64,000 nt of DNA, from assembly GCA_026770705.1 (NCBI GenBank), contig JANJGN010000036.1, positions 2,604,001-2,668,000 of the forward strand, read 5' to 3'. Shown here in pieces: positions 7,758 through 62,318 of this stretch. The notes under the pieces are model-generated. The model was not told the DNA's origin and made no database searches. It saw only the letters and a list, made by a program, of their open reading frames with translations. Each line of letters starts with the position of its first letter. Positions within the stretch are counted from its first letter, which is position 1. Origin of the DNA: Isurus oxyrinchus (lineage: Eukaryota). Made by a program: the position numbers and the translations under genes.

Positions 7758-8089
7758 AGATATATTCTCATACACAGACACATGAACACACATACACATA
7801 CACACAGTCACACACACAGATATTTCTCACTTTCACATACACAAACGTATACACATTCTCTCTCTCCTTACACACTCACACACACACATTCTCTCTCTCG
7901 CTCACACACGCATACACGTTCTCTCTCCCGCTCTCTCTCTCATGGCACACACACACACATGCATACACACTTTCACACAGACATGTCTTCTGATACACAA
8001 ACTCGCACACTCTCCCTCTCTCAAGTTCACTCCTGCAATCTCTCACACACAGTGTCTCACACAATCTCTCTCATGCTGTCACTCAGACA

Positions 8090-9050
8090 CAAGCCCTCTC
8101 AAACGCAATCCCTCTCACATGCAATCCTTCTCACACACAATGCCCCTCAAACTTATTCCTTTTCACATGCAATGCCCTCACAAGCAATCCCTTTCACACA
8201 CAATCCCTCTCACACACAATCCCTCTCACACACAATCCCTCTCACACAGAATCCCCCTCAAACATAATCCCCCTCAAACATAATCCCCCTCAGACACAAT
8301 CCCACTCACACAGAATCCCCCTCACACACAATCCCACTCACACACAATCCCTCTTACACATAATCCATCTCACACACAATCCCCCTCATACACAATCCCC
8401 CTCACACACAATCCCTCTCACACACAATCCCCCTCACACACAATCCCTCTCACACACAATCCCTCTCACACACAATCCCTCTCACACACAATCCCTCTCA
8501 CACAGAATCCCCCTCAAACATAATCCCCCTCAGACACAATCCCTCTCAGACACAATCCCCCTCACACACAATCCCCCTCAAACACAATCCCCCTCACACA
8601 CAATCCCCCTCACACACAATCCCTCTTACACATAATCCCTCTCACACACAATCCCCCTCACACACTATCCCTATCACACACAATCCCTCTCACACACAAT
8701 CCCCCTCACACACTATCCCTATCACACACAATCCCCCTCACACACTATCCCTATCACACACAATCCCCCTCACACACAATCCCTATCACACACAATCCCT
8801 CTCACACACAATCCCTCTTACACATAATCCCTCTCACACACAATCCCTATCACACACAATCCCTCTCACACACAATAGCCCTCGCACACAATCCCTCTCA
8901 CACACAATCCTTCTCACGCACAATCCCTCTCACACACAATCCCTCTCTCACACAATCCCTCTCACACACAATCCCTCTCACACACAATCCCCCGACACAC
9001 AATCCCTCTCACACATAATCTCTCTCACACACAATCGCCCTCACCACAAT
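8090..9050. repeat. 16-bp minisatellite (CCCTCTCACACACAAT)n, ~60 copies
   Basis: Directly visible tandem unit with minor variants. Confidence 0.95.
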
Positions 9051-9942
9051 CCCTCTAACACACGCTCTCACACATTTTCTCTCTCTCTCACACAGACTCT
9101 CTCTTCCCCCATGGTCTCTCTCCCAACACACCCCCACAATCCACCCCTCCCCCCCTCCATCTACCCCTACGGTCTCTCCATTTTTGGATGAGAGAGAGAT
9201 GGTGACAGAGTCTGGAGATCCCTTCTCACCCCATTTCTCAGCCTCTTTCTCTTGCACCCCTTCTTTCTCTCACTGTCTGTCCCACTCTCTCTCTCTCTTG
9301 CACCATCTCTCCCATGCCCTGGCTCCTTGACGCTTTCTGTCCCTCTCTCTCACTCCATCTCTCTCTCCTCAGTCCTCGGTCACTATCGCTCCCTCTCTCT
9401 CTTCCCCATCTCTCTGTCACTCCTTGTCCTTTTCTCTCTTACACCGTGTCTCTCTCTCTTGCACTGTCACACTATTAGTCTCTCCCTACTCCGAATCTCT
9501 CTCTCTCTCCACCCCTCTCTCTCTCACCCAGTCCCTCTCTCTCTCTCTCTCTCCCTTTCTCTTTCTCTGTCTCTCGCCTTCACCCTCTTGCTCTGTCCAG
9601 ATCTATCTCTCTCTCTCTCCCTGTCTCTCTGTTTGACTCTATCTTTCTCTCTCTCATCCTGTCTTGCTCCCTCTCTCCCTGTCCCTCTCTCTTGCCCAGT
9701 ATTTTTTGACCACAAATTGGATGTGAAGCTGAGGGGAAAATATTTGCAGAGTTACGGGGAAAGGGTGGACAAGTGAGGACAGCAAAACTGCTCTTGCAGA
9801 GAGTCGACAGTAGCTCGATGGGCTGAATGGCCTCCTCCTGTGCTGTAACCGTTTTGTGATACACACACATATTATGTTTTCGTTCTCAAATAAGCTTTAC
9901 TCCTTCCTCCATTGGAGGTTCCAGCACTTACACGTCACATGT

Positions 9943-10562
9943 GGGGAAGGGATCTCCCTCTACTTTTAAGGATGGAGCAGGGATCTCCCTCTATTTTAAA
10001 GATGGAGAAGGGATCTCCCTCCATTTTAAAGAGGGATAAGGGATTTCCCTCCATTATAAAGACGGAGAAGGAATCTCCCTCCATTTTAGAGATGGAGAAG
10101 GGATCGCCCTTCATTTTAAAGGTGGAAAGCGATCTACCTTCATTCTAAATATGGAGAAGGAATCCCCTCCATTTTAAAGGGGGATGAGGGATCCCCTCAA
10201 TTTTATAGAGGGTGAAAGTTTCTCACTTCATTTTAAAGATGGAGAAGGGATCTCCCTCCATTTTTAGGATGGAGGAGGGATCTCCCTCCATTTTAAAGAT
10301 AGGGAAGGGATTTTCCTCGAGCTCAAAGATGGAGAAGTGGTCTCCCTCTATTTTACAGAGGGGGAAGGGACCTCCCTCCATTTCAAAAATGGAGAAAGGA
10401 TTTCTCTCCATTTTTAAGATGGAAAATGGATCTCCCTTCATTTTAAAGAGACAGAAGTGATTCCCCCTTCATTCTAAAGAGGGAGAAGGGATTTCCCCTA
10501 CATTTTCAAGAGGGTGAAGGGATCTCCCTCCATCTTAAAGATGGGAATTGATCTCCTTCCAT
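9943..10562. repeat. 30-bp palindromic minisatellite (GGGATCTCCCTCCATTTTAAAGATGGAGAA)n, ~20 units
   Basis: Tandem 30-mers without unique spacers. They produce the artefactual ORFs (MEKGSPSILK)n and (MEGDPFSIFK)n. Confidence 0.95.
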
Positions 10563-18956: not shown

Positions 18957-19285
18957 TCAGAGTGAGCAATCGCTGAAGCTGATGGTGTTGAGAAGGGGTG
19001 AGTTCAGGGAGCCGTGGTTGACACTGCAGGAATATCTGGAGCCCTTCTTCCAGTCAGTGGCTGGGACTCTCAGGTAACTGCTCAGGCTGTAGGTTTGATC
19101 GCTGTCCGGGGACACAACGCTTGTCCTCACTCCGCTGTCTGTCTCTTTGCCATCCACACTCCAGAGGACCCGCACGAAACCCGGCTTAAAGCCACTCACC
19201 AGGCAGGACAGAGTGGCCGAACCTGAGTCTATCTCTTTCGAAGAAGGAGGGAGAAGAAGGACGGATGGCCTTCGATCCTCAGTAC
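18957..19285 (-). CDS. Ig light chain constant exon, type I / sigma-cart (NS5-like)
   Basis: Acceptor cacacAG|GT. (S)TEDRRPSVLLLPPSSKEIDSGSATLSCLVSGFKPGFVRVLWSVDGKETDSGV...YSLSSYLRVPATDWKKGSRYSCSVNHGSLNSPLLNTISFSDCSL*. C1-set Cys/Trp/Cys and the C-terminal interchain Cys are present. Closely resembles shark type I CL as recalled. Confidence 0.95.
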
Positions 19286-19309
19286 CTGTGTGTGTGAGAG
19301 AGTACAGAA

Positions 19310-19995
19310 AATATATTAATATAAAGAACACTCTGACCTTGCATTTGGAGAGAGAGAGGGGAGAATGCCCCTTAACGTATAGAAAACACTGACGTTTGTG
19401 TGAGAAAGACAGGAAGAAATTCATTACTATATAGGAGACTTTGACCTGTTTTTATCTTAGAAAGAAAGTTCATTTAAACACATAACACTCTTATCTATGT
19501 GCGCACGTGTGTGTGCGTGTGTGTGTATGTGAGAGAGAGAGAGAGAGAGAGAGAAAGAGACATGGAGAGATTCATTATATAGGAGGCTTTGACCTTCCTG
19601 TGTCTTTGAAAGAAAATTCATTCAAACACATAACATTCGTATCTATGTGTGCATATGTGTGTGTGAGAGAGAGAAAAATAAATAAGTCATTAATATAGAG
19701 AACACTCTGACCTGTGTGTTTGTGTGCGTGTGTGAGAGAGACGGAGAGGGGAGAGAGTGAGAGAGAGAGAAAGAAAGAGAGAGAGAGTTCTGTAATATGT
19801 AGAACACTGTTGAACTCTGCGTATGCGAGAGAGGGAGGAGAGAAAATGTATTCATATATAGAACACTCTGATCCCTGTGTGTGTGTGCACATTTTTGTGT
19901 GAGATGGAAATAGTTCATTAATATAAGGCAAGCTCTGACCTGCGCATGTGTGAGTGAGAAAAAATCTCATTAATACATAGATCTCGCTGATCTGA
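19310..19995. repeat. Degenerate intronic tandem repeat (TCATTAATATAGAGAACACTCTGACCTG with GT/GA tracts), ~9 units
   Basis: Motif recurs at ~19312, 19372, 19421, 19572, 19687, 19791, 19851, 19915 and 19968. Confidence 0.75.
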
Positions 19996-20634
19996 AATCG
20001 GACTGGACGCCAAAAGTCAATCACGAATCATTTTAACTTTAACTTAAATTATTGATTAATACACGTGTTCCAACAACTTCTTATTCCCATAATTCCCTGT
20101 CCAATCTTTAAATCCCTTTGCTGACATTGTAACAGTGACTGGGTGAATAATAGTTCGTTGCTTATTAATCTTTTGGGCGCCTTGGGGGGTGCTGAAGGCT
20201 CTGGAGGAAACTCAAAGAATCAGAGGCTGACCCAGCAAAATAAGAGGTCATGCGGCTCCTCACGCCTCTGCTAGTTCTTGTAAGAGCTTTCCAAGTAGTC
20301 CCACTCACCGCCTCTGCTTGCAAAGCACTGCAATTTTTCCCTTTCAAGTATATATCGACTTACACTTTTGAAAGTATCTATAGAATCTACATCCACCTGC
20401 CTTTCTGGAAGCCTGTTCTTTCATAATTTAATTTATAATTTGACCCTGATTCTCTCGTTATTTTCTCCCGGTGCAGTTCAATTCCAAGTCTGACTCAATT
20501 AACAATTCTGGATATAAATTGATCGGATCAAAATTTACGAAATGGGGATTTGACATCCGCTGGAGAATGATGTCGCCTCTAAATTAATAATAATTAAAAT
20601 AATGTGAGTTAGAGAGAGAGGGGTAATCACTTAC

Positions 20635-20671
20635 TCCGAACATTCAAGGTGGTCCCACCTCCGAAGATCCA
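20635..20671 (-). CDS. Ig light chain J segment
   Basis: WIFGGGTTLNVR(S) with the FGxG motif. GTAAGT donor in phase 1, matching the C exon. Confidence 0.95.
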
Positions 20672-20710
20672 CACAGAGCGGCGGTGCAATCGGACGGGTC
20701 ATCTGAAACT
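20672..20710 (+). other. J recombination signal, 23-bp spacer (non-consensus)
   Basis: CACAGAG (20672-20678), 23 nt, TCTGAAACT (20702-20710), directly abutting J. Confidence 0.8.
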
Positions 20711-20896
20711 CAGGCTGCGGGGAAAAGTACAGGATGAAATATTAATAACCTCTCTTTTATCACATTCCCTGTCACATTCTGCCTTTCACATGGGCTAGAA
20801 CACAGAGAACAAGAGAGATATTTCAAAAATAGCGTGAAACCCTGATAATAGTCATCGTTACTGACCAGGGTAATATTGAGAACCGCTATTGAGAAA

Positions 20897-20904
20897 ATGC
20901 AAAT
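20897..20904 (-). promoter_or_regulatory. Octamer ATTTGCAT in the V-J intervening DNA
   Basis: Perfect ATGCAAAT on the + strand, same orientation as the V promoter octamer. Confidence 0.45.
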
Positions 20905-21029
20905 TAACCCTTGGAATCTCAGTTAAATTTCTCAAGAACTTACACAAGGAACACTTTGGAAGTTGATGACATATTCTCGGCCAGGAACACTGCAGCTGCT
21001 GTTGTAATTCTGAGCGGTTTTCTACATAC

Positions 21030-21057
21030 AGTTTTTGTATGGCTCTGTCTCACTGTG
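21030..21057 (-). other. V recombination signal, 12-bp spacer
   Basis: CACAGTG + AGACAGAGCCAT (12 nt) + ACAAAAACT immediately 3' of V. Confidence 0.97.
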
Positions 21058-21383
21058 CAAGCCTGCTGAGCTATCCCAGACCTGACAGTAATAGACGGCG
21101 GAGTCACCGGACTCCAGGCTTCCAATGGTCAAAATGAAATTGTTCCTGGAGGTGTCTCTCGAAGGTTGAAAACGTTCGGTGAAGCCGGTGCCTCGAATGA
21201 CGTTCCCACCTGTGCTCTGATATAGCACCCAGACGGGAGATTCACCGGGTCGCTGCCGGTACCAGCGCACATTGAAGCTCCCCACATTCCCGTTCTGCAT
21301 CCCGCACTGTAATCGGGCGGTCTGACCAGCGGAGACTGGGTCGGAAATTGGGGACTGATTGAGGACGGGAACCGCCAGGACAC
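21058..21383 (-). CDS. Ig light chain V exon, type I / sigma-cart
   Basis: (G)VLAVPVLNQSPISDPVSAGQTARLQCGMQNGNVGSFNVRWYRQRPGESPVWVLYQSTGGNVIRGTGFTERFQPSRDTSRNNFILTIGSLESGDSAVYYCQVWDSSAGL. Open frame, acceptor ttgaAG. Confidence 0.97.
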
Positions 21384-21529
21384 CTTCAATTAAAAAGAGA
21401 CAAAAGAAAATATTCAATAATCTGGAGCAAATCTGTCGTTAATGCATCAATAAACATGGGTCTTTACCGGACCGTTCTCGGTGTTTAACGGATTCTCTGT
21501 AATCAAAACCCACTCCTCCAATATCTGAC

Positions 21530-46564: not shown

Positions 46565-49104
46565 TCAATTGTTTTTATTCTTAACAAATTTAACAATCAC
46601 CAGAATCGGATATATCAACACGCTCTTGAACTGTTCTCTGAACCTGCTCTGGATCACTCCATAAATAAAGGTGTTTGTGCAGGAACTTAAATTCAGCAGC
46701 ATAAACCTGATATGCTCAAAAGAGTAATCTAAGAGAGTTGTTCCTTCAATGTTATAATATAAGAATTCTGCAACAAATGGCAGCCACATGAGAAAGAAGC
46801 TGCCTAAAATTGTGAAGAGTAAAATAACGGACTTCCTTCTGCTCTTCATTTCTGGGTCACTGCGGCTCTCTCCATTGTTCTGACCCCTCAGAGCCTTACA
46901 GACTCTGCTGGCTACTAATATGTGTCTGACTGTAAGAATATTAAGCAGTAATATTAGAACACATGGGAGAAGTGGTGCTAACATTATATCAAACCAGTCC
47001 AAAGCCATCCAACCAAGCTCAATAAAAAGTTTGGCTTAACAGAACAAAACCAGGGCGTATTCTCAATTATCTCCACAGGTTCATATATAAAGTACAAAGC
47101 AGCGCTTTTTAAACTCATCAGAATGCACGTCATTGCTATAATTATAGACACAGTTTCCTTTGTGCAATATTTTGTTCTCTGCTTTTGGCAAAAGATGGCG
47201 ATGAAACGATCAAACGAGAAACTAATGGTTAACCAAACTGAGCTCGATGCATGAGTCAGAACAGCGATAGCACTGCACACATGGGTAAGGGAGAGTAAAG
47301 ACCCAGGTAGAGTTAATAACCCACCGAAATAATATGATTTCATTCATACTAACCAGTAGATCCGTCACCACCTTTGCCAGCATGTAGCTAGTGATACATT
47401 TGGAAAGACCACACTTTCCCCGGGTCAGTGTCACCATTGCAATGAAGTTAACTGTAAAAGAGAATGAGAGAGAAGTTGGGGGGAGGAGAGAGAAATGATA
47501 CAGGAAGTTAATGATACATCTCAACAGCGAATTCTAAAAACCTGATTCTAAAAATATTGCGTTTGACTTTGGGGAGATTTCAGTCTTTCCATCCATGTTT
47601 ATAAAAGCGCACTGAGGTAGATCATTCAGAAAGATTAGAAACAAAACTCTGAGTCTCTCAGATTCCTGTTTCATTCTCAATTCCTGGCTGGTCTCTTCAA
47701 CCTAAGACCACGCTTCAAACTAATTCTTCAAACTAATGAACGTGGAGATTGTTCAGATAATTTCAGAATGTAGTGAAATGCATTTAAATGTATTATGTTG
47801 CATTTTAGTAAGAAACCGTTGAAGTAATATTATTAGTATCATGGAGAACAAAAGTGGTCCTTGATCACTTTAGAAAAAAATCACTAAATTTGGAGGTCCA
47901 TGTTCATAAATACATTAGACGTATAATAGAGCAGCATCTGGAATGATATATCTGGAAAGATACAATTGAAAAGAGGGAAATATATGTTAAAGCTGCTGAC
48001 GAATCTTGGTTAGACGACATGTGGAGTGCTGCTTGCATATGGGCGCTTTGGAGAAGCAGCAAAAATGATTCATAAGGAAATGAATGATTATTTCTATCGT
48101 GAAGGAATTAACCGACTGTTTTCCTTTCTCGAATATAAGCGGCTAGAGATGACCTAACCAAAGAATTCTGTTGGAGAAACTATGATTGTTTCAGTGAAGA
48201 AAGTCTATTGTGGAAAGCTTTCTTGGAGATTGACAAAATTGTGTTAGGAATAGACACGTGAGGCAATGGGAATTCAGCCCCTATTGACAGAGGTACAAAG
48301 ACTACTTCATGCTGTGAGTGGTAATGACCTGGAACTCACATTCCAAGGATGGTGGCAGCGGAGAGAATGAATTATTACAAAAAGACATTCACTGAGGCAA
48401 ATAATCTGACAGGCAAAAACCGGAGTCAGGGTTTTACATGCGTTACTCTAATATAACGGGTATGCTCTCCATGGTCGAATGACCTTCTTCCGTGTTTTAA
48501 TAATTCTATGGGTCCATGACTCTGGGAGACACCTGGACCTGTGTCAGATACGCATATAATAAAATAAGATTTCATCCGGGGTATAAACCCTAAACACACT
48601 GAATGCCCAATTAAACTGAATACCATGATTTGGGAGAGATTCCTGATCTCGGCTTCGTAACACTGAGACCGTGTGATTTTCAATTAACTATCGCTGGAAG
48701 CATATTTGTGAAGAAATTTTTCAGAACTGCTGCATTGCTCAATATGAAACCGCATTAGCCCCTGATAATTGTCAGATAATTGTTCCTCTGCCAGGATTTT
48801 GTTCCCAGTGCATTTAATATCGAGGCTAATCCAGTTGCATCATCAGAGTTGGAAATACACAGATAATTTCAAATCTTATGGGGAGATTAAAAGAGCGAAG
48901 AAGAGCGTTAATTCCTTTCATCTTGCACCAACTGAACAGAGCAAAGAGCTGAGAGGGGAAAAATGAGGCGACAGAAATATTGCTACTTGCATCAGCACAA
49001 TTATACATCATTAACAGATGAAATAAAAACTCACCAGGAACTCCAACTGCTGCGAGACAAGGATAGTAAATGTGCTCTATCGGAAGAATGGATGCATATC
49101 CCAT
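46565..49104 (-). pseudogene. GPR139/GPR142-like class A GPCR, two exons (49035-49104; 46565-47451), disrupted
   Basis: MGYASILPIEHIYYPCLAAVGVP|VNFIAMVTLTRGKCGLSKCIT...SVWLTISFSFDRFIAI...LLPCVLILLLNILTVRHIL...DPEMKSRRKSVILLF...LSSCTNTFIY. Frameshifts near 47310 and 47025 give a premature stop at 47222. Confidence 0.9.
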
Positions 49105-53108: not shown

Positions 53109-53151
53109 ATGGGCGTCATCACTCTCTGCGCCCTGCTCCACCTCTTCCCAG
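53109..53151 (+). CDS. VJ-C1 receptor: leader exon
   Basis: Kozak gacaATGG. MGVITLCALLHLFP+G, donor GTTAGA, phase 1, in frame with the VJ exon. Confidence 0.8.
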
Positions 53152-53774
53152 GTTAGATTTCCTTACTCCTGATGAGCGGGGGGACCCCAGGGGAAGCTCG
53201 CTGAGGAATGTCAGGAGGGTGAGGAGGCGACGCCGCCGCTTTCTGGAATATTCCTCCTCTGCCGAGGGACTGAATGGTCTAAAGGTCAGAACTCCAGGTA
53301 AATCGAAATGTCCCACATCTCATGGCTGCAATTGTGAAGAGGACAGGACAGCCCTGACTGCGCCCCCGACCGAGACTTATCCCTTCACCCAGCAGTCTGT
53401 CTGATTATTACCACGGTGCTATTTCTGGGATCTTGCTGTGCGCTAACTTTTCGCCGCATTTCCGAGAATGCAAGAGTGACCGCCCTTGAAAAAGTAATTC
53501 ATGTGAAGAGCCTTTATCTCCTTCCTATACCTTTCTTTTTCTCTCTCTCTCTTTCTTTTTTTCTTTGTTTCTTTGTTCCTTCCTCTCTTCCTCCAAGTCC
53601 GATCTCAAATTTAACCCTCAGCGCTTTATCCCGGCTACAGGTCAGGAACTGGCGATCCTTCCTGACAGAATGTCCCTGTCACCAGGTGACAGGCGGAATG
53701 TCTCATTGGTATAAAACAGGTTTTATGTTTCCCTGACATAACAGGATGTCTTGTGATGTGTTCTGTCCCCTCAG

Positions 53775-54113
53775 TGACCGTCTCTCAGGCCGCGTTCCCG
53801 CAAACTCCGGCCGCTCAGACCGTCTCGGTGGGCAGTAGCTTCAAGGTGCATTGCCACACAGGCTGGTTATCAAGTGGAGCTGTTTACTGGTATAAACAGC
53901 GGCACCGAGAGCACCTGCAGTTCGTTCACAGGGTGAGAAAGCACATCCCTGCAGAGGGAAGGTTTTCAGGAGAAATCAACGACAAATCTACCATTTACTC
54001 CCTGGTGATCGAGGAGGTCCAGAGAAATGACTCGGGTGTTTATTACTGCGCAGCACGGAAACCCCATGGAATGTCCCTGGTCTTCGGGACCGGCTCCAAA
54101 TTGTTCACCACAG
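53775..54113 (+). CDS. VJ-C1 receptor: single exon encoding a complete V domain with fused J motif
   Basis: (V)TVSQAAFPQTPAAQTVSVGSSFKVHCHTGWLSSGAVYWYKQRHREHLQFVHRVRKHIPAEGRFSGEINDKSTIYSLVIEEVQRNDSGVYYCAARKPHGMSLVFGTGSKLFTT. cAG/GTAAAA sites, 339 nt, phase 1-1, no RSS. Confidence 0.93.
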
Positions 54114-54169
54114 GTAAAAATAAAAAGAGAAATGAGATTGTTTACTCGCTTTATCACTGTTTTTTCCTT

Positions 54170-54520
54170 CGATCACGGGATGTGGGTGTCTCTGGCTCGG
54201 CAAAGCATTTATTACCCATCCCTAATTACCCTTGTTCAGGAGGCATTTAAGAGAAGGTGTGGATCTGGAGTCAGATGTAGGGTCAGAACGGGTAAGGGCG
54301 GCAGATTTCCTTCCCTAAAGGGCATTAGTGAACCAGATGGGTGTTATTTTCTTAATGATGACAATCGATTCCTGGTCATCATTAGACTTTTAATTCCAGA
54401 TACTTATTCCGTTCGAATTCCTCCCTCTGCCGGAGGTGCGATTCGAAGCCGGGTCCCCAGAGCATTACTCACTCTCGAGATTACCCCAGCACAGTGAAAA
54501 CACCACTCCGCACCGTGTCC
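54170..54520 (-). mobile_element. tRNA-derived SINE in the VJ-C1 intron
   Basis: Reverse complement has an A/B-box-like head (..ggcttcgaatc..). Same family as the + copy at ~57410-57865. Confidence 0.7.
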
Positions 54521-54587
54521 CCCAAACTACCAATAACCAGGAATTCATGGTGAATAATAATTATATCTTACGTTCCAAACTCTCCAG

Positions 54588-54890
54588 GTACGCCGACAAT
54601 ATTCCTCTTAGCTCCGCCGGTGGGTGAAGCTGTTGGGATGAAGACTGTCCCATTGATGTGTTTGGTGACCAACGCGGCCTCTGTTACCCTTCCCGTCCGC
54701 TGGAATGTTTCCACGTGGGAGACCGAGGGATGGACGGATTCTGGAACAATCGACTCCAAAGGGGCGTACAATATAAGAAGCCTCATCAGGGTCCCGCCAG
54801 GGACGTGCAGCGGGAGCGGGTTCTGCACTTGCTCTGTTCAAATCACCTCCACTCAAAGTCTCATCAGTGAAAGGTTCTCATATCAGAGAG
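54588..54890 (+). CDS. VJ-C1 receptor: C1-set Ig domain exon
   Basis: (G)TPTIFLLAPPVGEAVGMKTVPLMCLVTNAASVTLPVRWNVSTWETEGWTDSGTIDSKGAYNIRSLIRVPPGTCSGSGFCTCSVQITSTQSLISERFSYQR. 303 nt, phase 1-1, with PxIFLLxP, CLV, VxW, DGxY-like and xTCxV hallmarks. Confidence 0.9.
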
Positions 54891-54999
54891 GTAATTATTG
54901 AAAATATCCCTGTACTGTATATTTAATTGCTGATGTGAGATTTAATTGTTCGCTAATACCGCATTTATTTTAATAGTCGTTCCCTTTCCCTGTGTATGG

Positions 55000-55625
55000 A
55001 TCACAGGCACAGAATCGTAGAAAGTTTACGGCACAGGAAGAGGCCATGGTGTCTGCCCAATAGAAAAAAAGAGCCACCTATCCCAATCCCACTTTCCAGC
55101 ATTTGGCCCGTAGCCTTGCAGATCAGAGCGCTACAGATGCACATCCAACTGTCTTTCCAATGAATTGATGGTTTCTGCCTCTACTGCCCTTTCAGGCAGT
55201 GAGTCTCAGACCCCTGCAACCCTCTGTGTGAGAAAAATCTTCACTCGTCTCCCCTCTAATCTTTCTACAAATCACTATAAACCTGGACACTGACCTCTCT
55301 GCTAAAGTAGAAAAGCCATTCTCTCCCCCTCCATCCAGACTCCAAACAATTTTGTACACTTCAACCCAAACTCCCGTCAGCCTCCTCTGCTCCAAGGAGA
55401 ACAGTCCCAGACAATCCAATGTTTCCTCATAGCTACAGTTTTCCAGTCGTGGTAACATCCTTGTGAGTTTGTTCTGTACCCTCTCTAATGCAATCACGCC
55501 CTTTCTGTAATGAGGTAACCAGAACTGCACACACCACTCACGCTGCAACCTAACGCATGTTTTATACAGTTTCAGCATAGCCTCCCTGCTCTTGTATCCT
55601 AAAGCTCGTCTAATAAATGAAAGGA
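55000..55625 (-). mobile_element. CR1 LINE 3' fragment
   Basis: MLKLYKTCVRLQREWCVQFWLPHYRK...LGLFSLEQRRL. Confidence 0.85.
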
Positions 55626-55949
55626 CCTGGGGCTAATTACCTGGTCAATTACCTCTGCCACATTTCTCAATGTTTCAGTGTTTAGCTCACTGAAAGTTGA
55701 AGTTCATCTGTTTAACTATGCCAGAGTTATATGGTGGGAGATAAGGAATCAGTCTGAAATTTTGCAGTTTAAATTGGAAAATTGAAATTCAATTTCCAGT
55801 TTGAAACTTGAGCAGTATTTTGCTTCTATCCTCCCAAACGCACAATACCATCAACATGTGCTCTTACTCTCATATCCCTTTTTCTGCCGTGTGTTTAAGG
55901 AGTTTCTATGCAATGTGACTTTCCGTTCTAGCCATTTCCACATTCTAAC

Positions 55950-56105
55950 GATAAAAGCAAAATACGGCGGATGCTGGAAATCTGAAGCAAAAGCAGGAAA
56001 AAAAGACTTGGAGAAGGGTCACGCAGACTCGAAACGTTACCTCCGTTTCTCTCTCCACAGATGTTGTCAAGCCCGCTGAGATTTTCCAGTTTTTTTCTAT
56101 TTTTG
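55950..56105. mobile_element. Short insertion (Penelope-associated hairpin-type repeat) with a 14-bp target-site duplication
   Basis: TTCCACATTCTAAC at 55936-55949 and 56106-56119 flanks it. A related copy lies at 57559-57690. The family assignment is from recollection. Confidence 0.65.
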
Positions 56106-56776
56106 TTCCACATTCTAACCACCCTGAACAAAACAAAAAAAAAAACACGGTTTCGCTTGAAAGCCCAATTGGGATTCATAATTGGTAGAAGAGTTGAAAG
56201 CTCGACATTCCAGGAGACAAAGCGGACTTTGCATTAAATTCAGATTGATACAAAAGTATCGGGATAGGTCCAAATAGTGGAGCCGATGTTTGATTCCTTT
56301 GGCGAAGAAGAATGTTCTACAATGGACACTAAACCACAAGACAACAACACTAGCAGAGACAAAGTAAGCCACTTGATTGGCACCTTATAAATACTCACCC
56401 TCTGCATGGGCCCAGTGGCAGTAATATCTACCATCTACAAGGTGTCCTGCAGAATCTCGCCATGGTCACGTTGTTCTCTAATCTTATTGTGTTTTCTTGA
56501 ATTTACCTCTTAATCCTTGTCTCTTCCAGGCTCGCTCTGTCTCTCCACCAATCTGTCTACCCCTTTTCATTTTCATATTTTTATTTCACTCGTGTTTTTG
56601 ATTATACTGGTAAAACTAACTTTGAGTCCCCATCCCTCGCTCTTTTGAGTGGGCGTTGGTGTGTAATCTTGAAATTTTGAAAAGTGACAGGTGGCACGGG
56701 TAAGGGATTTTTCAATATTGTTTCTCCGCCCGTCTCCTCCCCCACCCCTCACCCCCTCACCCGCCCCCTTCTTCAG

Positions 56777-56890
56777 AGCCGCGAAAATGTACTTGCTACC
56801 TGTTGATTTACCGAAGTTCATTGGGGACCATTCTCTTTCTATTGACCTTGACTGTCGTCGCTAGATGGAGCTACGCAAAGCGACACTCAG
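56777..56890 (+). CDS. VJ-C1 receptor: connecting peptide and transmembrane exon
   Basis: cttcttcAG|...|GTAGGA, 114 nt, phase 1-1. (E)PRKCTCYLLIYRSSLGTILFLLTLTVVARWSYAKRHS. Confidence 0.8.
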
Positions 56891-57026
56891 GTAGGAAGGG
56901 CTGCAAATTTTTGGGGCTCTACACCCCTGCAAGTGAGTCGATGCACACTTTGCCTCTTTTTGACACTTTAATTAACCCGATAAGGGTAAAATTTGCAGAC
57001 ATTTATGTCCTTTTTTTATATATCAG

Positions 57027-57085
57027 GCAACGGGAGCTCGGATAAAACTTTCGCGGATTCTGGGCCACGTGAACGGAACCAAGAG
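57027..57085 (+). CDS. VJ-C1 receptor: first cytoplasmic exon
   Basis: tttatatatcAG|...gag|GTAAAT, phase 1-0. (G)NGSSDKTFADSGPRERNQE. Confidence 0.75.
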
Positions 57086-57409
57086 GTAAATACATGGAGA
57101 CTTTTTTGCAGTTTCCTGTCGCTGATTTTATACAACAACGTTGATATGGGATAGCTATGGTCCCGAAAGTTCACTAAACTTCTCATAGTCAAAATAGCAT
57201 CATTTACAATTTTGCTAGAACTGGAAACTGCTGGAAATATATATCTGGAGATTTAATATCAGTAATGATATTTAATGATTTTTCAATCGAACGATAATAG
57301 AGTTAAAATGGTTGAATTATGAGAACAGGTAGCACATATTCGTTGTTTATACTGAAGAATAAATCATGTTCCAATTGTAATGCTTACGCTGCTTAAATTA
57401 TCTATGAGG

Positions 57410-57865
57410 GATGTGGTGGCAGAGTGGGATTGTCACTGGGCTACTGTTCAACTGTAATTTCCTGGATACCCGGGTTCCAATTCCAGTGCAGCAAAAGGCT
57501 CAATTTTAATTCAGTCCAAATTTGGAATTAAAAAAATCTCTAAACCATAGGTGATTGTCTGAAGAAGGTTCATATGGACTCGAAATGTTAATTGTTTTTT
57601 TCTCTCCACAGATGGTGTTGTACCTGCTGAGTTTTTCCAGCATTTTCTGTTTTTGTTCCAAATTTCCAGCATCTGCAGTATTTTACTTTCATTATATTGT
57701 CTGGTGCACTAATGCCCCATAGGGGAGAAGATCTGCCACCCTCACCTGGACTGGCTGGCACGTGACTCCAGACCCACAGCAATGTGGTTGACTCTTAACT
57801 GCAATTAGGGATGGGCACTCAGTGCTGGCCTAGGCAGCGACGCCAACATTATATGAACGAATGAG
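57410..57865 (+). mobile_element. tRNA-derived SINE carrying a nested hairpin-type repeat
   Basis: gtggtggcagagtgg (A box) ... gggttccaattcc (B box). The 3' tail aattagggatgggca..gctggcct is shared with the LINE end at ~51860-51925. Confidence 0.7.
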
Positions 57866-58177
57866 GAAATGATTGGATAAGACGAGAAAATCTGTTACAG
57901 GCGCGAATGCTCAGGGACAAAACCTTAAAATTGGGAGCAGCCGTTCAGAGGTGACATCAGAAAGCACCAGCACACACGAGGGGGAGGTGGGGATCTCAGC
58001 TAGATTTTAATATTTACTTTCAATCCTAAAGCATTGCAACGTATTTGAAGATAGAGACCAACATTGGTCTAATTGAATGGGGTATCAAGTTCCAGGGGAG
58101 CTCCTAATGTTTATATGATGATAATAGTTACAATTTCCCCTCATAGACTCTTGATGCTCGACTGGTGTTTACTGCAG

Positions 58178-58279
58178 ATCCGGCGTCCTGACGGGGAAGA
58201 ACAGTTATTAGATGAAGCAGGAGATGACGCGTTGAAGAACATTTCCAACACGGAATTCAATAAGAAATATTGTCCAATG
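58178..58279 (+). CDS. Candidate cytoplasmic exon ending in YCPM
   Basis: ttactgcAG|...atg|GTAATT, 102 nt, phase 0-0. IRRPDGEEQLLDEAGDDALKNISNTEFNKKYCPM. Confidence 0.55.
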
Positions 58280-58575
58280 GTAATTCCAACAATATTTCCT
58301 CGATCTTGTGCCGTGCTCGTGTGTTTGGACGCTCATTGGCATAGGTGTGGAAATGTAACTTAGAAGACCTCTAGGTGTCAGCACTTCCACTAGACGGAGT
58401 TTCACTTTTATGTTAGTGAGTAACAAGCACTTGTCACCAACGAATGACCCCTCAGATGTATTTCCAATATAGAAACGATTTAGCACCTACTGTGGATTTG
58501 TCATTATTATTGTTCTCCTTCTTGTTCTTGCTCTTATTATTATCCGTCACGTAAATGTCCATCGGTGATATCACA

Positions 58576-59165
58576 ACATGAACACGGACGTATACAGAGA
58601 TATAACTGCATACCTAAACCTTGTATAACACTGCAAAATGTGGTTTCCTCAAACGAACAGAAGCGGCAGGGATCTTATTCTGATTCTGGATCAGTGTCTT
58701 TCGAAGGAATTGCTCCCTAATACTTAACTGACCCTTCTATTATTAGATGTCAGTGCGGTTTACAGTTAGATCGATAATGAGGACCGGATTCAAATTAAGA
58801 TGATGATTACAGGCTCCTAATGCCCTCTGTTTACAGAGAGACATATCCCTTGCAATCTGAAGCTAAATGCAAAGAAAAATATCAAACAAGCAGCGCTGGT
58901 TTTAAATCTAAGAATGAGACATCACCTTCCTGAAACATATAAGATTCTGAGGGAGCTTTGACAGGGTAGATGTTGAGAGGCTGTTTGCCGTCGTGGGGAA
59001 TCTGGAACTAGTGTTCACAGCTTCAGAATGAGGGTTTCCCATTTACAACTGATACGATGTGATTGATTTTTAAATTGTCCTGCCCAGAGAGCATTTGAAG
59101 CTGGGTCAGTGAACATGCTGAAGTCTGAGTTAGACAGATTTTTGATTGACAAGGTAGCCAGAAAT
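58576..59165 (+). repeat. ~600-bp direct repeat, copy 2
   Basis: Paralog of 51986-52580, offset 6590 bp. Confidence 0.9.
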
Positions 59166-59816
59166 TATGGGGAGCAGACAGGAAAGTGAAGCCAAGGCCA
59201 CAAAAGGTTCAGCCATGTTCTTATTGAATGAGGGCACAGGCTCGGGAGCACAAATGTTCTACTCCTGCTCATATTTCTCAGGATAGTTTAATATTTGGTC
59301 AATTGAAATAAATGTTCAGATCGTAATTGTTGACTGGTCTAAAATCAATCTTAAAAGGAAAATATTTTAACAATTTACACCAAAGGACTCTGTGTTAAGG
59401 TGAACTGATTTTCACACCGTTTTAAATACAGTGAGACTTAGTTAGGAGATTTACAAAATGGTTCCATTGCGCCATTGCTTCGTGGGAGCTTTTCACTCCG
59501 CTTCCTGAAACAAGGAGCTGCAATGGGTATTTAAAATTGACGTGAATTAAACAAACGCTCATTAAAATGGCCTTGTTAAACATTAATATCGACCCCAGCA
59601 GCCAGATTAATGAATCCGAATCCCAATTAAGATGAAGATGAGAAACCGGTTTACCGCGATGCTCATCGCAAAGGGTCAAATTGCTGCATCCCAATCGACA
59701 CAAAACATTTAGAATCTTCTGCTGGCTGAAATCATTCTTTTGTGGGACTCTCTCATGGAAAACTTGAGCCAATTATAAAGTTAAAACAGCAAATCCGTGC
59801 TGCAAATTCTCCACAG

Positions 59817-59865
59817 GATCCCAAGTCAAGGAATCTTCAGGAGAATTCTGAGCGACGGAAGCTGG
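59817..59865 (+). CDS. Candidate cytoplasmic exon
   Basis: tctccacAG|...g|GTGAGA, phase 0-1. DPKSRNLQENSERRKL. Confidence 0.5.
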
Positions 59866-59988
59866 GTGAGAAGAGAGAGATACATTCATCTTAATGTGAC
59901 TAACGAGATAGAATGAAATACAGTCAGAATGGGTTCTGAAATGAGCAGACAGTGTTGTCCCTCACTGAGTGCCTGAACTGTTTTGCAG

Positions 59989-60182
59989 AAATGCTTGACC
60001 TTGAAAAACAAAGAAGTGAGTCAGTGACCCTTGCAGCAGAGAGCGGGGCTGGGCAGCAGAGAGGCTGTGACAGCGAGCTTCAGAAAGACTCCTCGATCAC
60101 AGCCCATTCAGAGAGTGTGAAAAGCACATCGAGGGCGGAAATCGTTGACCCAGATTCTGATCACTTTACATTTGAGATATAA
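59989..60182 (+). CDS. Candidate terminal exon A
   Basis: ttttgcAG|, phase 1. (E)MLDLEKQRSESV...DPDSDHFTFEI*, with AATAAA at 60428. An internal GTGAGT at 60016 could instead make this a 27-nt exon. Confidence 0.45.
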
Positions 60183-61299
60183 AGTTGTTCGAGGCAGAAG
60201 CTCTTAGTGGGTTTCCTGTTATTTTACCGTATCTTATGCAAGCTTCACGTACCGAGCTGCCTTCAGAGGTGAAACGCTGGGTATCAATGTTAAACTGCTG
60301 AGAGAAGGCGGCTTGCTCCAAAGATAGATTCAACTGAACAGAGAAGAGGCTGGTTTACAATGAACCTCATTTACAGCGCCCTTATCGATGTGGCGTCTGT
60401 CACTGTTTATCTTCAATCCCGGTTTAGAATAAAATTTGCAGGTTCCCAATATTATTCACAAATGATGCCTTTACTTCACCTGCTGCTCACAACGAATAAT
60501 CTGTCTGTTACCCACGCACAGGCAACACTGCAACAGCTCACTCAGGCTTTTAATGTAGTTTTGAATACACCCCACACACAAGTCATTGAATATGTTTCAG
60601 TCTCGGTATTGAGCTGATAGTATCGGGAATTTTGCACACCACGGTGCCATTCAGGTGAGGTTATTGGAACATATATTACTTTACTGAGACTTTATTTTTG
60701 GGGAAATTTTCATGGCGTCCTGTCACTGAATGTTTCACGTAGTTAACAGAGAGCTTGGTCAGTCTGCAGCATCTGATTTTATGTCAAATCCCACTCGTCC
60801 GTTTAACTGGAATCGGAACATATTCCTCATCCTTCTCCCGCTCTGATAAAATAAATGATAAGTTAATGTCCAGGAAAGAATTCACCTGTCAGACTTAATG
60901 CGAATTTCCAACCTTTTCCCTTCCAACGTTCTCCTTTCATTCAGTTTATCTCTACAATGAAGCCATTCCACATCCCCTGCCTCTCTCTTTCCTCTCACCT
61001 CCACCCAACTGTTTTGCGTTCATATATAAGCCCCTGGAATTGCAGATATGGCCAATCCGAACCCAATGTCATTTTACACTTATGGCAAAATATGTTTCTG
61101 TTTTTAGTGACAAAGATGGAATCAGTTGGCACAGAAAGTACGTTTGTGTGTGTGTGTGTGTGTTGCGTGTGTGTTTGTGTCTTTTTATGTGTTTGTGTGT
61201 CTTTTTATGTGTGCATGTGTGTGTATGTGAATGTGATTGTGCGTACCTTAGTGGGTCACTGTCTACCACTGTCTCCACCCAGCTCCCTCACTCAACTAT

Positions 61300-61720
61300 A
61301 CGCCCCTCAGAGTCATAAGTGGAGGGTTCGAGTCATCACGCCAGAGAATTGAGCAAGAAGTATAGACTGGCTCATCACTGAGGGAGTGCTGCACTGACTA
61401 AGGTGCCGCTTTCAGATTCAGTGTTAAACCTTGGCCCATTCTGCCCGTTGATTGGAGTGAAAGATGCACCATCGCTATTCCGTGAAGAGGTGGGGTGGGG
61501 ATTGGGTTGTCTCCTGTGACCTGGGCGATATTTAATCTCTCGACCAACATCTACAAACACATTTTCTAGATCATAATCTTATTGTTTTATTCCTGGGATC
61601 TTTTTGAGTGCAATATAGCGGCCCCATTAATAACATTAAAAACAGTGAGTGCACTACAAGAAGTGTCTGAAAAACAAATGGAGTTCCTGAAACCTTGAAA
61701 AGCGCTATATTAACTCAAGC
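61300..61720 (+). mobile_element. Deu-domain-type SINE (degenerate)
   Basis: B box ggttcgagtc, actgagggagtgctgcact, ctgggatctt..., ending in aaagcgctatat. Confidence 0.7.
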
Positions 61721-62258
61721 CTTTTAATTGTGTGTGTGTGTGTGTTATTTGATCTGGATACAATTAATTCTGTGGGATCTCCCCAACCGTATAGATAGGA
61801 TAGAGCGAAAGATGGTAATCTGATTGGCGACTTAACATCAATGCAATCCAATAAACTTGAGATTCATCACCCCAATTTTCTGATTACACCTTGGTGATTT
61901 CTGTATTAAGTTGCTTTCTGAATTCTGCTTCTCTATTCCAATACGATAATTCAGGCAACTCTTGCAGCGGCACATTTAACAAATCAATTATAAAACTGAG
62001 ATAGGGAGCAATGAAAGCAGAGATAAAAAATACATTTTAAAAGACATGCATATTTGTGGCAGAAAAAAATGCAAAGTTATGGGAAAGGAGATGAGTTCAC
62101 TGGGACGAATTGGGTTACTTTTTCAAAGAGCTGGTATAGACACCATGGGCCGAATGGCTTCCTTCTGTGCTGAATCATTCTATGATTCGAAAAAGTTCTA
62201 TTACAGCGTTAACCTGACTTCACCTCTAACTATTTTTGAATGTGAATACATATCCGAG

Positions 62259-62318
62259 ACTCAGGGCGGACCTCTCTACGCCTTCCTTGAGTTTGCTGCA
62301 TTGCAAAATAAATCATAA
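62259..62318 (+). CDS. Candidate terminal exon B with an ITIM-like tyrosine motif
   Basis: Phase 0, TQGGPLYAFLEFAALQNKS*. The acceptor is weak (ccgAG). AATAAA at 62688. Confidence 0.45.
   Translation, partial: TQGGPLYAFLEFAALQNKS

Follow-up and report, generated by a model that had tools for sequence, protein, structure and literature searches.

A non-rearranging VJ-C1-transmembrane receptor gene with a tyrosine-less tail near an immunoglobulin light-chain minicluster of Isurus oxyrinchus

Introduction

What kind of gene carries an antigen-receptor-type variable (V) domain and its joining (J) motif in a single exon, follows them with one constant-type (C1) domain and a transmembrane (TM) segment, and lies within a few tens of kilobases of a rearranging immunoglobulin light-chain (IgL) minicluster? 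The question is raised by a 64,000-nucleotide (nt) stretch of the shark Isurus oxyrinchus (assembly GCA_026770705.1, contig JANJGN010000036.1, positions 2,604,001 to 2,668,000 of the forward strand), referred to below as the window. An earlier note on this DNA had placed a leader-VJ-C1-TM-tail receptor gene at 53109-62318. Non-rearranging V(J)-C1 genes are the best living models of the receptor that was split by the RAG transposon and gave rise to antibodies as well as to T-cell receptors (TCRs).

The locus is a real gene and one more member of a known, poorly described family, for which a corrected exon structure is given here. With good confidence, it is read as a six-exon gene whose product, a type I membrane protein 300 amino acids (aa) long, belongs to an elasmobranch family of non-rearranging VJ-C1-TM receptors, taken as the cartilaginous-fish branch of the PRARP family; the copy itself is read as altered in signalling or in early decay. 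No description of a VJ-C1-TM family in cartilaginous fish was found in the literature searched.

Gene model

The gene is on the + strand and comprises six exons (53109-58191) placed by homology to relatives of ~300 aa. Exons were searched singly, and the TM and tail exons were located by aligning the ~300-aa relatives back to the window (tblastn). Exon 1 (53109..53151, 43 nt) holds the start ATG and the first 14 leader residues, MGVITLCALLHLFP. It was matched by tblastn to the leaders of P0001, P0008 and P0012, ends in phase 1 at a donor GT, and shares 13 of its 14 residues with Cetorhinus P0051. The leader is completed in exon 2 (53775..54113), which continues through the V domain into a J motif already joined in the germline, YYCAARKPHGMSLVFGTGSKL. 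This single exon holds the Cys-Trp-Cys core, the motif DSGVYYC and the J-type sequence FGTGSKL. Its Pfam V-set match has an expectation value (E) of 2e-15, kappa V and TCR V domains come first among its PDB matches (E ~1e-15), and the family V profile gives it 184.7 bits, the highest score of all rows. Neither a heptamer (CACAGTG/CACTGTG) nor a nonamer of a recombination signal sequence (RSS) was found in or beside 53775-54113, and therefore this exon does not rearrange.

Exon 3 (54588..54890) encodes the C1-like constant domain (PTIFLLAPP...LMCLVT...RWNVS...CTCSVQ). The Pfam C1-set match (E 1e-3) falls under the family cut-off; the best PDB matches are the CH3 and CH1 domains of IgG (E 1e-9 to 1e-7), and the family C profile yields 148 bits. 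A CxC motif is located in the F strand, and a WNVS sequon is present. Exon 4 (56777..56890) contributes a membrane-edge Cys, an extra Cys and the TM helix; it was established by tblastn to residues 235-269 of P0001 and by its splice sites, and the position of the helix was predicted in a model of the database homologue P0050, which was substituted for folding. The cytoplasmic tail of ~44 aa is spread over two small exons. The first, exon 5 (57027..57085, NGSSDKTFADSGPRERNQE), aligns to residues 266-286 of P0001 and ends in phase 0; the second, exon 6 (58147..58191, TLDARLVFTADPAS), aligns to residues 287-298 of the same protein (tblastn in both cases) and closes with a TGA stop at 58189-58191.

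The six exons sum to 903 nt (300 codons), and P0001, P0048 and P0049 are equally long. Every junction is GT-AG; the first four split codons for V, G, E and G in phase 1, and the final junction is in phase 0. No stop, frameshift or damaged splice site was found in any of the six exons.

Much of the 5' part had been recognized in the earlier note, and the agreement up to the C1-like exon is well outside what chance would give. The ATG at 53109 and the leader exon are borne out by leader homology and the donor GT, the joining of V and an FGxG J motif in one RSS-free exon by the V-set match and the lack of a heptamer, and the succeeding C1-like domain by the sub-threshold C1-set match together with the IgG matches. 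The claim that the exons join in frame at canonical sites holds from the leader to the TM exon (GT-AG, no stops), but it fails for the tail exons that were proposed. A TM segment is indeed encoded, in exon 56777-56890, but the TM-like open reading frame (ORF) at 58473 lacks support.

The search for sequencing runs returned none recorded as RNA. Short contigs from four runs (X2, X7, X4 and X6) traverse the introns at 95-99% identity, and their depth over exons 4-6 is almost nil. Because the contigs run through introns, the four runs are DNA, in part from paralogues or another individual.

High-copy interspersed repeats occupy parts of the introns and the region just 3' of the gene (54253-54452, 55853-56052, 57453-57852 and 58853-59252). 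Over these stretches, the summed contig depth in the four DNA-like runs reached 10^3 to 10^6, and adjacent bins mostly had 1-10^2. Many spurious joints linked 56061-56069 with 57622-57634.

The receptor family

When the C1 exon was compared with 1.84 billion representative proteins, 47 matches were returned, the top ones being V-C1-TM proteins of ~300 aa from sharks and rays; the family was then extended by searching with two of the 47. Close relatives (42-95% V identity) were found in Scyliorhinus, Mustelus, Cetorhinus, Rhincodon, Chiloscyllium, Hemiscyllium, Stegostoma, Heterodontus, Pristiophorus, Pristis, Leucoraja, Hypanus and Mobula, and in several species the paralogues share one scaffold. 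The family membership suggested by the earlier note is thus confirmed: the relatives, which come from many sharks and rays, are almost all ~300 aa long. Automatic annotation has labelled them, among other things, “immunoglobulin kappa light chain-like”, “gamma-1 heavy chain-like”, “lachesin-like” and “T cell receptor alpha chain MC.7.G5-like”. The relatives terminate in a tail of the form ETLYAxLxF. A second subfamily, B, has a degenerate J motif and an xLYASLEF tail; it is present in sharks, skates and rays, and in chimaeras through P0031 of the elephant shark. More distant kin were found in Callorhinchus and, with a V-C1-Cys-TM-tyrosine layout, in Latimeria, Protopterus, a caecilian, turtles, crocodilians, squamates, birds and a frog.

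Two of the tetrapod entries carry misleading names. P0046 (Rhinatrema bivittatum, a caecilian; 305 aa) is misnamed “programmed cell death protein 1”; it has the V-C1-Cys-TM layout and keeps an xTxYAxV tail (ETDYAFV). P0153 (Alligator mississippiensis), misnamed “putative immune-type receptor 1n”, has the same layout, and the end of its model is devoid of the tail motif.

To assess conservation, 30 full-length relatives were aligned. The Cys pairs of both Ig domains, the Trp, the membrane-edge Cys, and the Y, A and L of the tail are the same in all 30. Variability in the V domain peaks in three loops equivalent to complementarity-determining regions, and the frameworks and J motif are nearly fixed. 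The Isurus copy shares with the family a split leader, a single-exon VJ with an FGxGS/T J motif and free of RSS, one C1-like domain with the F-strand CxC motif and the WNVS sequon, the membrane-edge Cys, a single TM segment and the length of 300 aa.

In a tree of C1 domains, this copy joins P0050 and P0051 of Cetorhinus with a support of 99. All VJ-C1-TM proteins fall on one side, where shark subfamily A has a support of 94, subfamily B one of 85 and the tetrapod branch one of 92. The other side is made up of the IgL C domain from the window itself, IgM domains of gar and the ten C domains of the UrIg2-like P0010, which are thereby placed outside the VJ-C1-TM family. P0010 (Carcharodon carcharias, “titin-like”, 1105 aa) consists of ten C1-type domains in alternating near-identical pairs; it is probably a misnamed UrIg2 model, as its sequence matches the published description of UrIg2.

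The AlphaFold model of P0050 has a mean predicted local distance difference test (pLDDT) score of 70.9, with values >85 in the V domain, and superposes on TCR and Fab chains with Z scores of 15-17. A homodimer prediction with two copies of the P0050 ectodomain gave a score of 0.13 and a mark of 0.32, values that say nothing either way.

The signalling end of this copy

The closest relative is P0050 of Cetorhinus maximus. The identity between the two proteins is 106/112 residues (95%) in the VJ exon and 89/98 (91%) in the C1 exon, vs. 28/37 (76%) in the TM exon, 16/19 (84%) in the first tail exon (exon 5) and 11/14 (79%) in the second (exon 6); the divergence is thus far greater in the TM and tail exons than in the V exon. 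Three differences from the family stand out. In the tail, which reads TLDARLVF, an Asp (codon 58153-58155) replaces the Tyr that is present in 30/30 aligned homologues; the E-T-L-Y-A-x-L-x-F motif is broken at this position, and its remainder and the position of the stop are kept. This loss had gone unremarked in the earlier note. In the TM helix, YGSSL has become YRSSL; the Arg (codon 56812-56814) lies in the outer third and takes the place of the Gly of lamniform and catshark relatives. Finally, exon 4 has a second Cys beside the conserved membrane-edge Cys.

Because the Tyr is Asp, the motif, which resembles an immunoreceptor tyrosine-based inhibitory or switch motif (ITIM or ITSM), cannot work in this copy, which is therefore unable to signal through the family tyrosine. 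Taken together, the lost tail Tyr, the Gly-to-Arg change in the TM helix and the faster divergence of the TM and tail exons suggest either a signalling-altered paralogue (a decoy or an adaptor-coupled activating form) or one in early decay.

The strongest of the competing accounts holds that the copy is a young pseudogene, unexpressed or functionless, with an intact frame and a signalling end that drifts after the loss of function. This is a possible explanation that deserves some weight. It would account for the loss of an invariant Tyr, for identities of 76-84% in the TM and tail exons vs. 95% in the V exon, and for the extra Cys and Arg within the TM exon. It is opposed by the intactness of all six exons and by the V and C1 exons, which retain every family-invariant residue.

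A tentative alternative is that the gene encodes one side of a paired-receptor system, either its activating partner or a decoy. By analogy, the TM Arg would pair with an acidic adaptor (FcR-gamma or DAP12), and the loss of the Tyr would remove inhibition. Known activating partners (SIRP-beta, activating KIR, LILRA) show this pattern: their ectodomain is kept, the ITIM is lost and the TM segment has a basic residue. The features of this copy are consistent with that pattern: the Arg is in the outer third of the predicted helix where lamniform and catshark relatives have Gly, and the Tyr is gone while the ectodomain stays 91-95% identical to that of P0050. In addition, relatives without a tail or without its tyrosine are known (P0052, P0015 and P0023), and the nearest named clusters by protein-language-model features, beyond the family's own, are those of SIRP (0.94-0.95), no more than a lead. 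However, the tail keeps its length, whereas activating partners usually have a shortened one; the TM column that holds the Arg is not strictly conserved across the family; and the evidence comes from one copy in one genome.

Relation to known receptor systems

PRARPs are reportedly receptors with a non-rearranging V and a J-like FGxG motif in one exon, a TM segment and a tail with an ITIM-like tyrosine. They are said to form disulfide-linked dimers, to occur in bony fish, amphibians, reptiles and birds, and to be absent from mammals; reportedly, neither members in cartilaginous fish nor multigene clusters have been described. By this description, PRARP resembles the present family in its layout and in the taxonomic range of its relatives, and the conserved membrane-edge Cys of the family is compatible with PRARP-like dimers, but this copy lacks the tail tyrosine. 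The libraries searched contain relatives of the shark family from birds, reptiles and amphibians; a chicken PRARP turned up in none of them, either as a sequence or by name. The family is probably the cartilaginous-fish branch of the PRARP family, and the PRARP-like lead of the earlier note is judged to have been apt. The PRARP work (Fu et al. 2019) is cited in PMC10751288.

A second comparison is offered by UrIg and UrIg2 of elasmobranchs, which have a non-rearranging single-exon VJ, a split leader, C1-type domains and a TM segment (PMC12227049). UrIg2 is located among Ig and TCR genes and is a single gene with 9-11 C domains and no ITIM tail (PMC12227049). The single-exon VJ, split leader, C1-type domain(s) and TM segment are shared with the gene described here. 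Whereas UrIg and UrIg2 are single genes with many C domains, the present family has one C1-like domain, a tail with a tyrosine motif, and many paralogues. A UrIg gene would have VJ with three or more C1 domains; a single C1-like exon was found in the window besides the IgL C exon.

SIRP-alpha and SIRP-beta likewise combine a V domain bearing a J-like motif with C1-set domain(s) and a TM segment; the inhibitory form has an ITIM tail, and the activating form has a basic TM residue and no ITIM. SIRP proteins, however, have three Ig domains (V-C1-C1), with several ITIMs or else a short tail and a TM Lys, whereas this gene encodes one C1-like domain and a single motif position. No SIRP chain was present among the best 60 of several thousand PDB matches or the best 50 fold-search entries; these lists are filled with antibodies and TCRs, so their silence says little.

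In the NITRs of teleosts and the TCR-like gene of lampreys, too, a germline V domain bearing a J-like motif is combined with another Ig domain, a TM segment and ITIM tails, and NITRs form multigene clusters. The second domain of NITRs is I-type rather than C1-like, and NITRs and the lamprey gene are different lineages.

Rearranging IgL and TCR genes share with this gene the order V(J)-C1 and the split leader, and the fold of their chains is the one on which the P0050 model superposes. They differ in that their separate V and J segments are flanked by RSS, whereas V and J are here in one exon without a heptamer. IgL also lacks a TM segment, whereas this gene has one, along with its own signalling-type tail. 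Identities of this gene to IgL and TCR are 25-31% at best. The earlier note's view that the product is not a chain of either IgL or TCR is upheld by the lack of RSS, the TM segment and tail, and the nearest proteins, all of which are VJ-C1-TM.

Interpretation and significance

The ectodomain consists of one C1-like domain and a V domain of the antigen-receptor type into which the J motif is built. In the proposed mechanism, the V loops of the family, which contain its most variable columns, would bind a ligand, and the membrane-edge Cys would permit disulfide-linked dimers. Once phosphorylated, the tail Tyr of ETLYAxLxF would recruit SH2 phosphatases, making the family inhibitory leukocyte receptors. 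With Tyr replaced by Asp and the TM Gly by Arg, the Isurus copy deviates from this scheme and may act as a decoy, as an activating receptor coupled to an adaptor, or may be in early decay.

Several points weigh against this interpretation. For the PRARP assignment, no database name reads PRARP. In the C1 tree, whose comparison set holds Ig C and multi-C1 proteins but no TCR or SIRP sequences, the deepest split has weak support (72). Inhibition through the tail is inferred, as is dimerization. The replacement of Tyr by Asp is a single-base difference in one assembly, with a read depth of nil over the codons, and with one assembly the Asp and Arg changes may still represent drift or base error. 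Lastly, the four runs are of low coverage and DNA-like; they contain no splice joints and provide no RNA support for the locus or for the innate-like lymphocyte receptor proposed in the earlier note.

An unlikely but far-reaching extension is that the family is the surviving form of the two-domain VJ-C1 ancestor, that its interleaving with IgL preserves the neighbourhood of the RAG split, and that the tyrosine-less, TM-Arg copies are the activating halves of germline paired receptors in sharks. A two-domain VJ-C1 gene has been postulated by Flajnik and colleagues as the ancestor of UrIg and of Ig/TCR (Fig. 2 of PMC12227049), and it is this layout that the family has; its members range from sharks to birds, with an expansion in sharks, and at the present locus it adjoins a rearranging IgL cluster. 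Public annotation hides it under names like “Ig kappa light chain-like”. Peculiar to this locus is a tail without the tyrosine combined with a TM Arg, and the correct gene model and this natural variant make up a pair of forms for comparing inhibitory with activating signalling.

The 3' stretches and the length of the tail

In contrast to the 300-aa model ending at 58191, the model built on the earlier note is a receptor of ~400 aa in which V-C1 is continued by a long tail of several exons as far as 60182, or by alternative tails as far as 62318. The 400-aa product through 60182 was not reproduced. The gene end at 62318 is unsupported, as the stop of the relatives corresponds to 58189-58191, and a long tail is wrong; it is two short exons.

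Two candidate exons in this region were rejected. For the hydrophobic ORF 58473-58565, considered as a TM exon, each phase-1 AG acceptor meets a stop or shifts the frame, and the ORF also has no match to any relative. The stretch 59989-60182 has no homology to relatives of either subfamily.

A third stretch, 62259..62318 (+), is a terminal exon of the subfamily B type: it reads TQGGPLYAFLEFAALQNKS and then a stop, with an AATAAA over the stop and a phase-0 AG acceptor. It encodes TQGGPLYAFLEF..., which includes GGPLYAFLEF and aligns with the P0037 tail over 20 aa at 60% identity. No B-type V, C1 or TM exon was found elsewhere in the 64-kb window, only this orphan tail exon; it is for that reason read as an orphan remnant of subfamily B, with its membership in the studied gene uncertain and its use unproven. 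Because it is phase-compatible with exon 5, it could in principle act as an alternative last exon.

This compatibility speaks for the longer receptor: the phase-0 end of exon 5 fits the phase-0 acceptor of the ITIM-like exon at 62259, which has a poly(A) signal and could in principle substitute for the tyrosine-less exon 6. Nonetheless, the longer receptor is improbable. A long tail is unknown among the relatives, every complete one of which stops at the position of 58189-58191; neither 59989-60182 nor the 58473 ORF has matches, and the latter cannot be entered in phase; and the exon at 62259 groups by sequence with the other subfamily.

The IgL minicluster and other features of the window

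The IgL minicluster (18999-21417, - strand) is unrearranged, with RSS flanking both V and J. The V segment (21022-21417, -) leads into CACAGTG, then a 12-nt spacer and then ACAAAAACT. The J segment (WIFGGGTTLNV; near 20665, -) is preceded by the heptamer-like CTCTGTG, which comes after a 23-nt spacer, and a single C exon is located at 18999-19268 (-). The minicluster, a putative sigma-cart cluster in the earlier note, lies upstream of the receptor gene and is transcribed divergently from it, as that note had stated, and 31.7 kb lie between them (31.5 kb in that note). The IgL C and the receptor C1 are 29% identical, and no match between the receptor V and the neighbouring IgL V was found at E 0.01; because of these two results, the receptor gene is judged not to be a joined or processed copy of the neighbouring IgL. 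The broader notion of a germline-joined or processed copy of some rearranging IgL or TCR gene, which might be prompted by the proximity of the minicluster and by the occurrence of germline-joined IgL genes in sharks (PMC12227049), is scarcely tenable given these same comparisons, the retained introns and split leader, the TM exon and cytoplasmic tail, and the nearest proteins in two very large libraries, which are VJ-C1-TM and include no Ig or TCR.

Two further features were noted. At 46565-47524 (-), an intronless rhodopsin-type G-protein-coupled receptor extends over three overlapping frames, with DRF and NTFIY motifs and a Pfam 7tm_1 match (E 7e-9) on its last third; it looks like a frameshifted pseudogene. 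The stretch 8000-10000 is strongly C-rich (GC skew -0.68), and one of its frames repeats the peptide ...SLSHTIPLTHNPPHTQ..., on which basis the stretch is classed as a tandem or low-complexity repeat.

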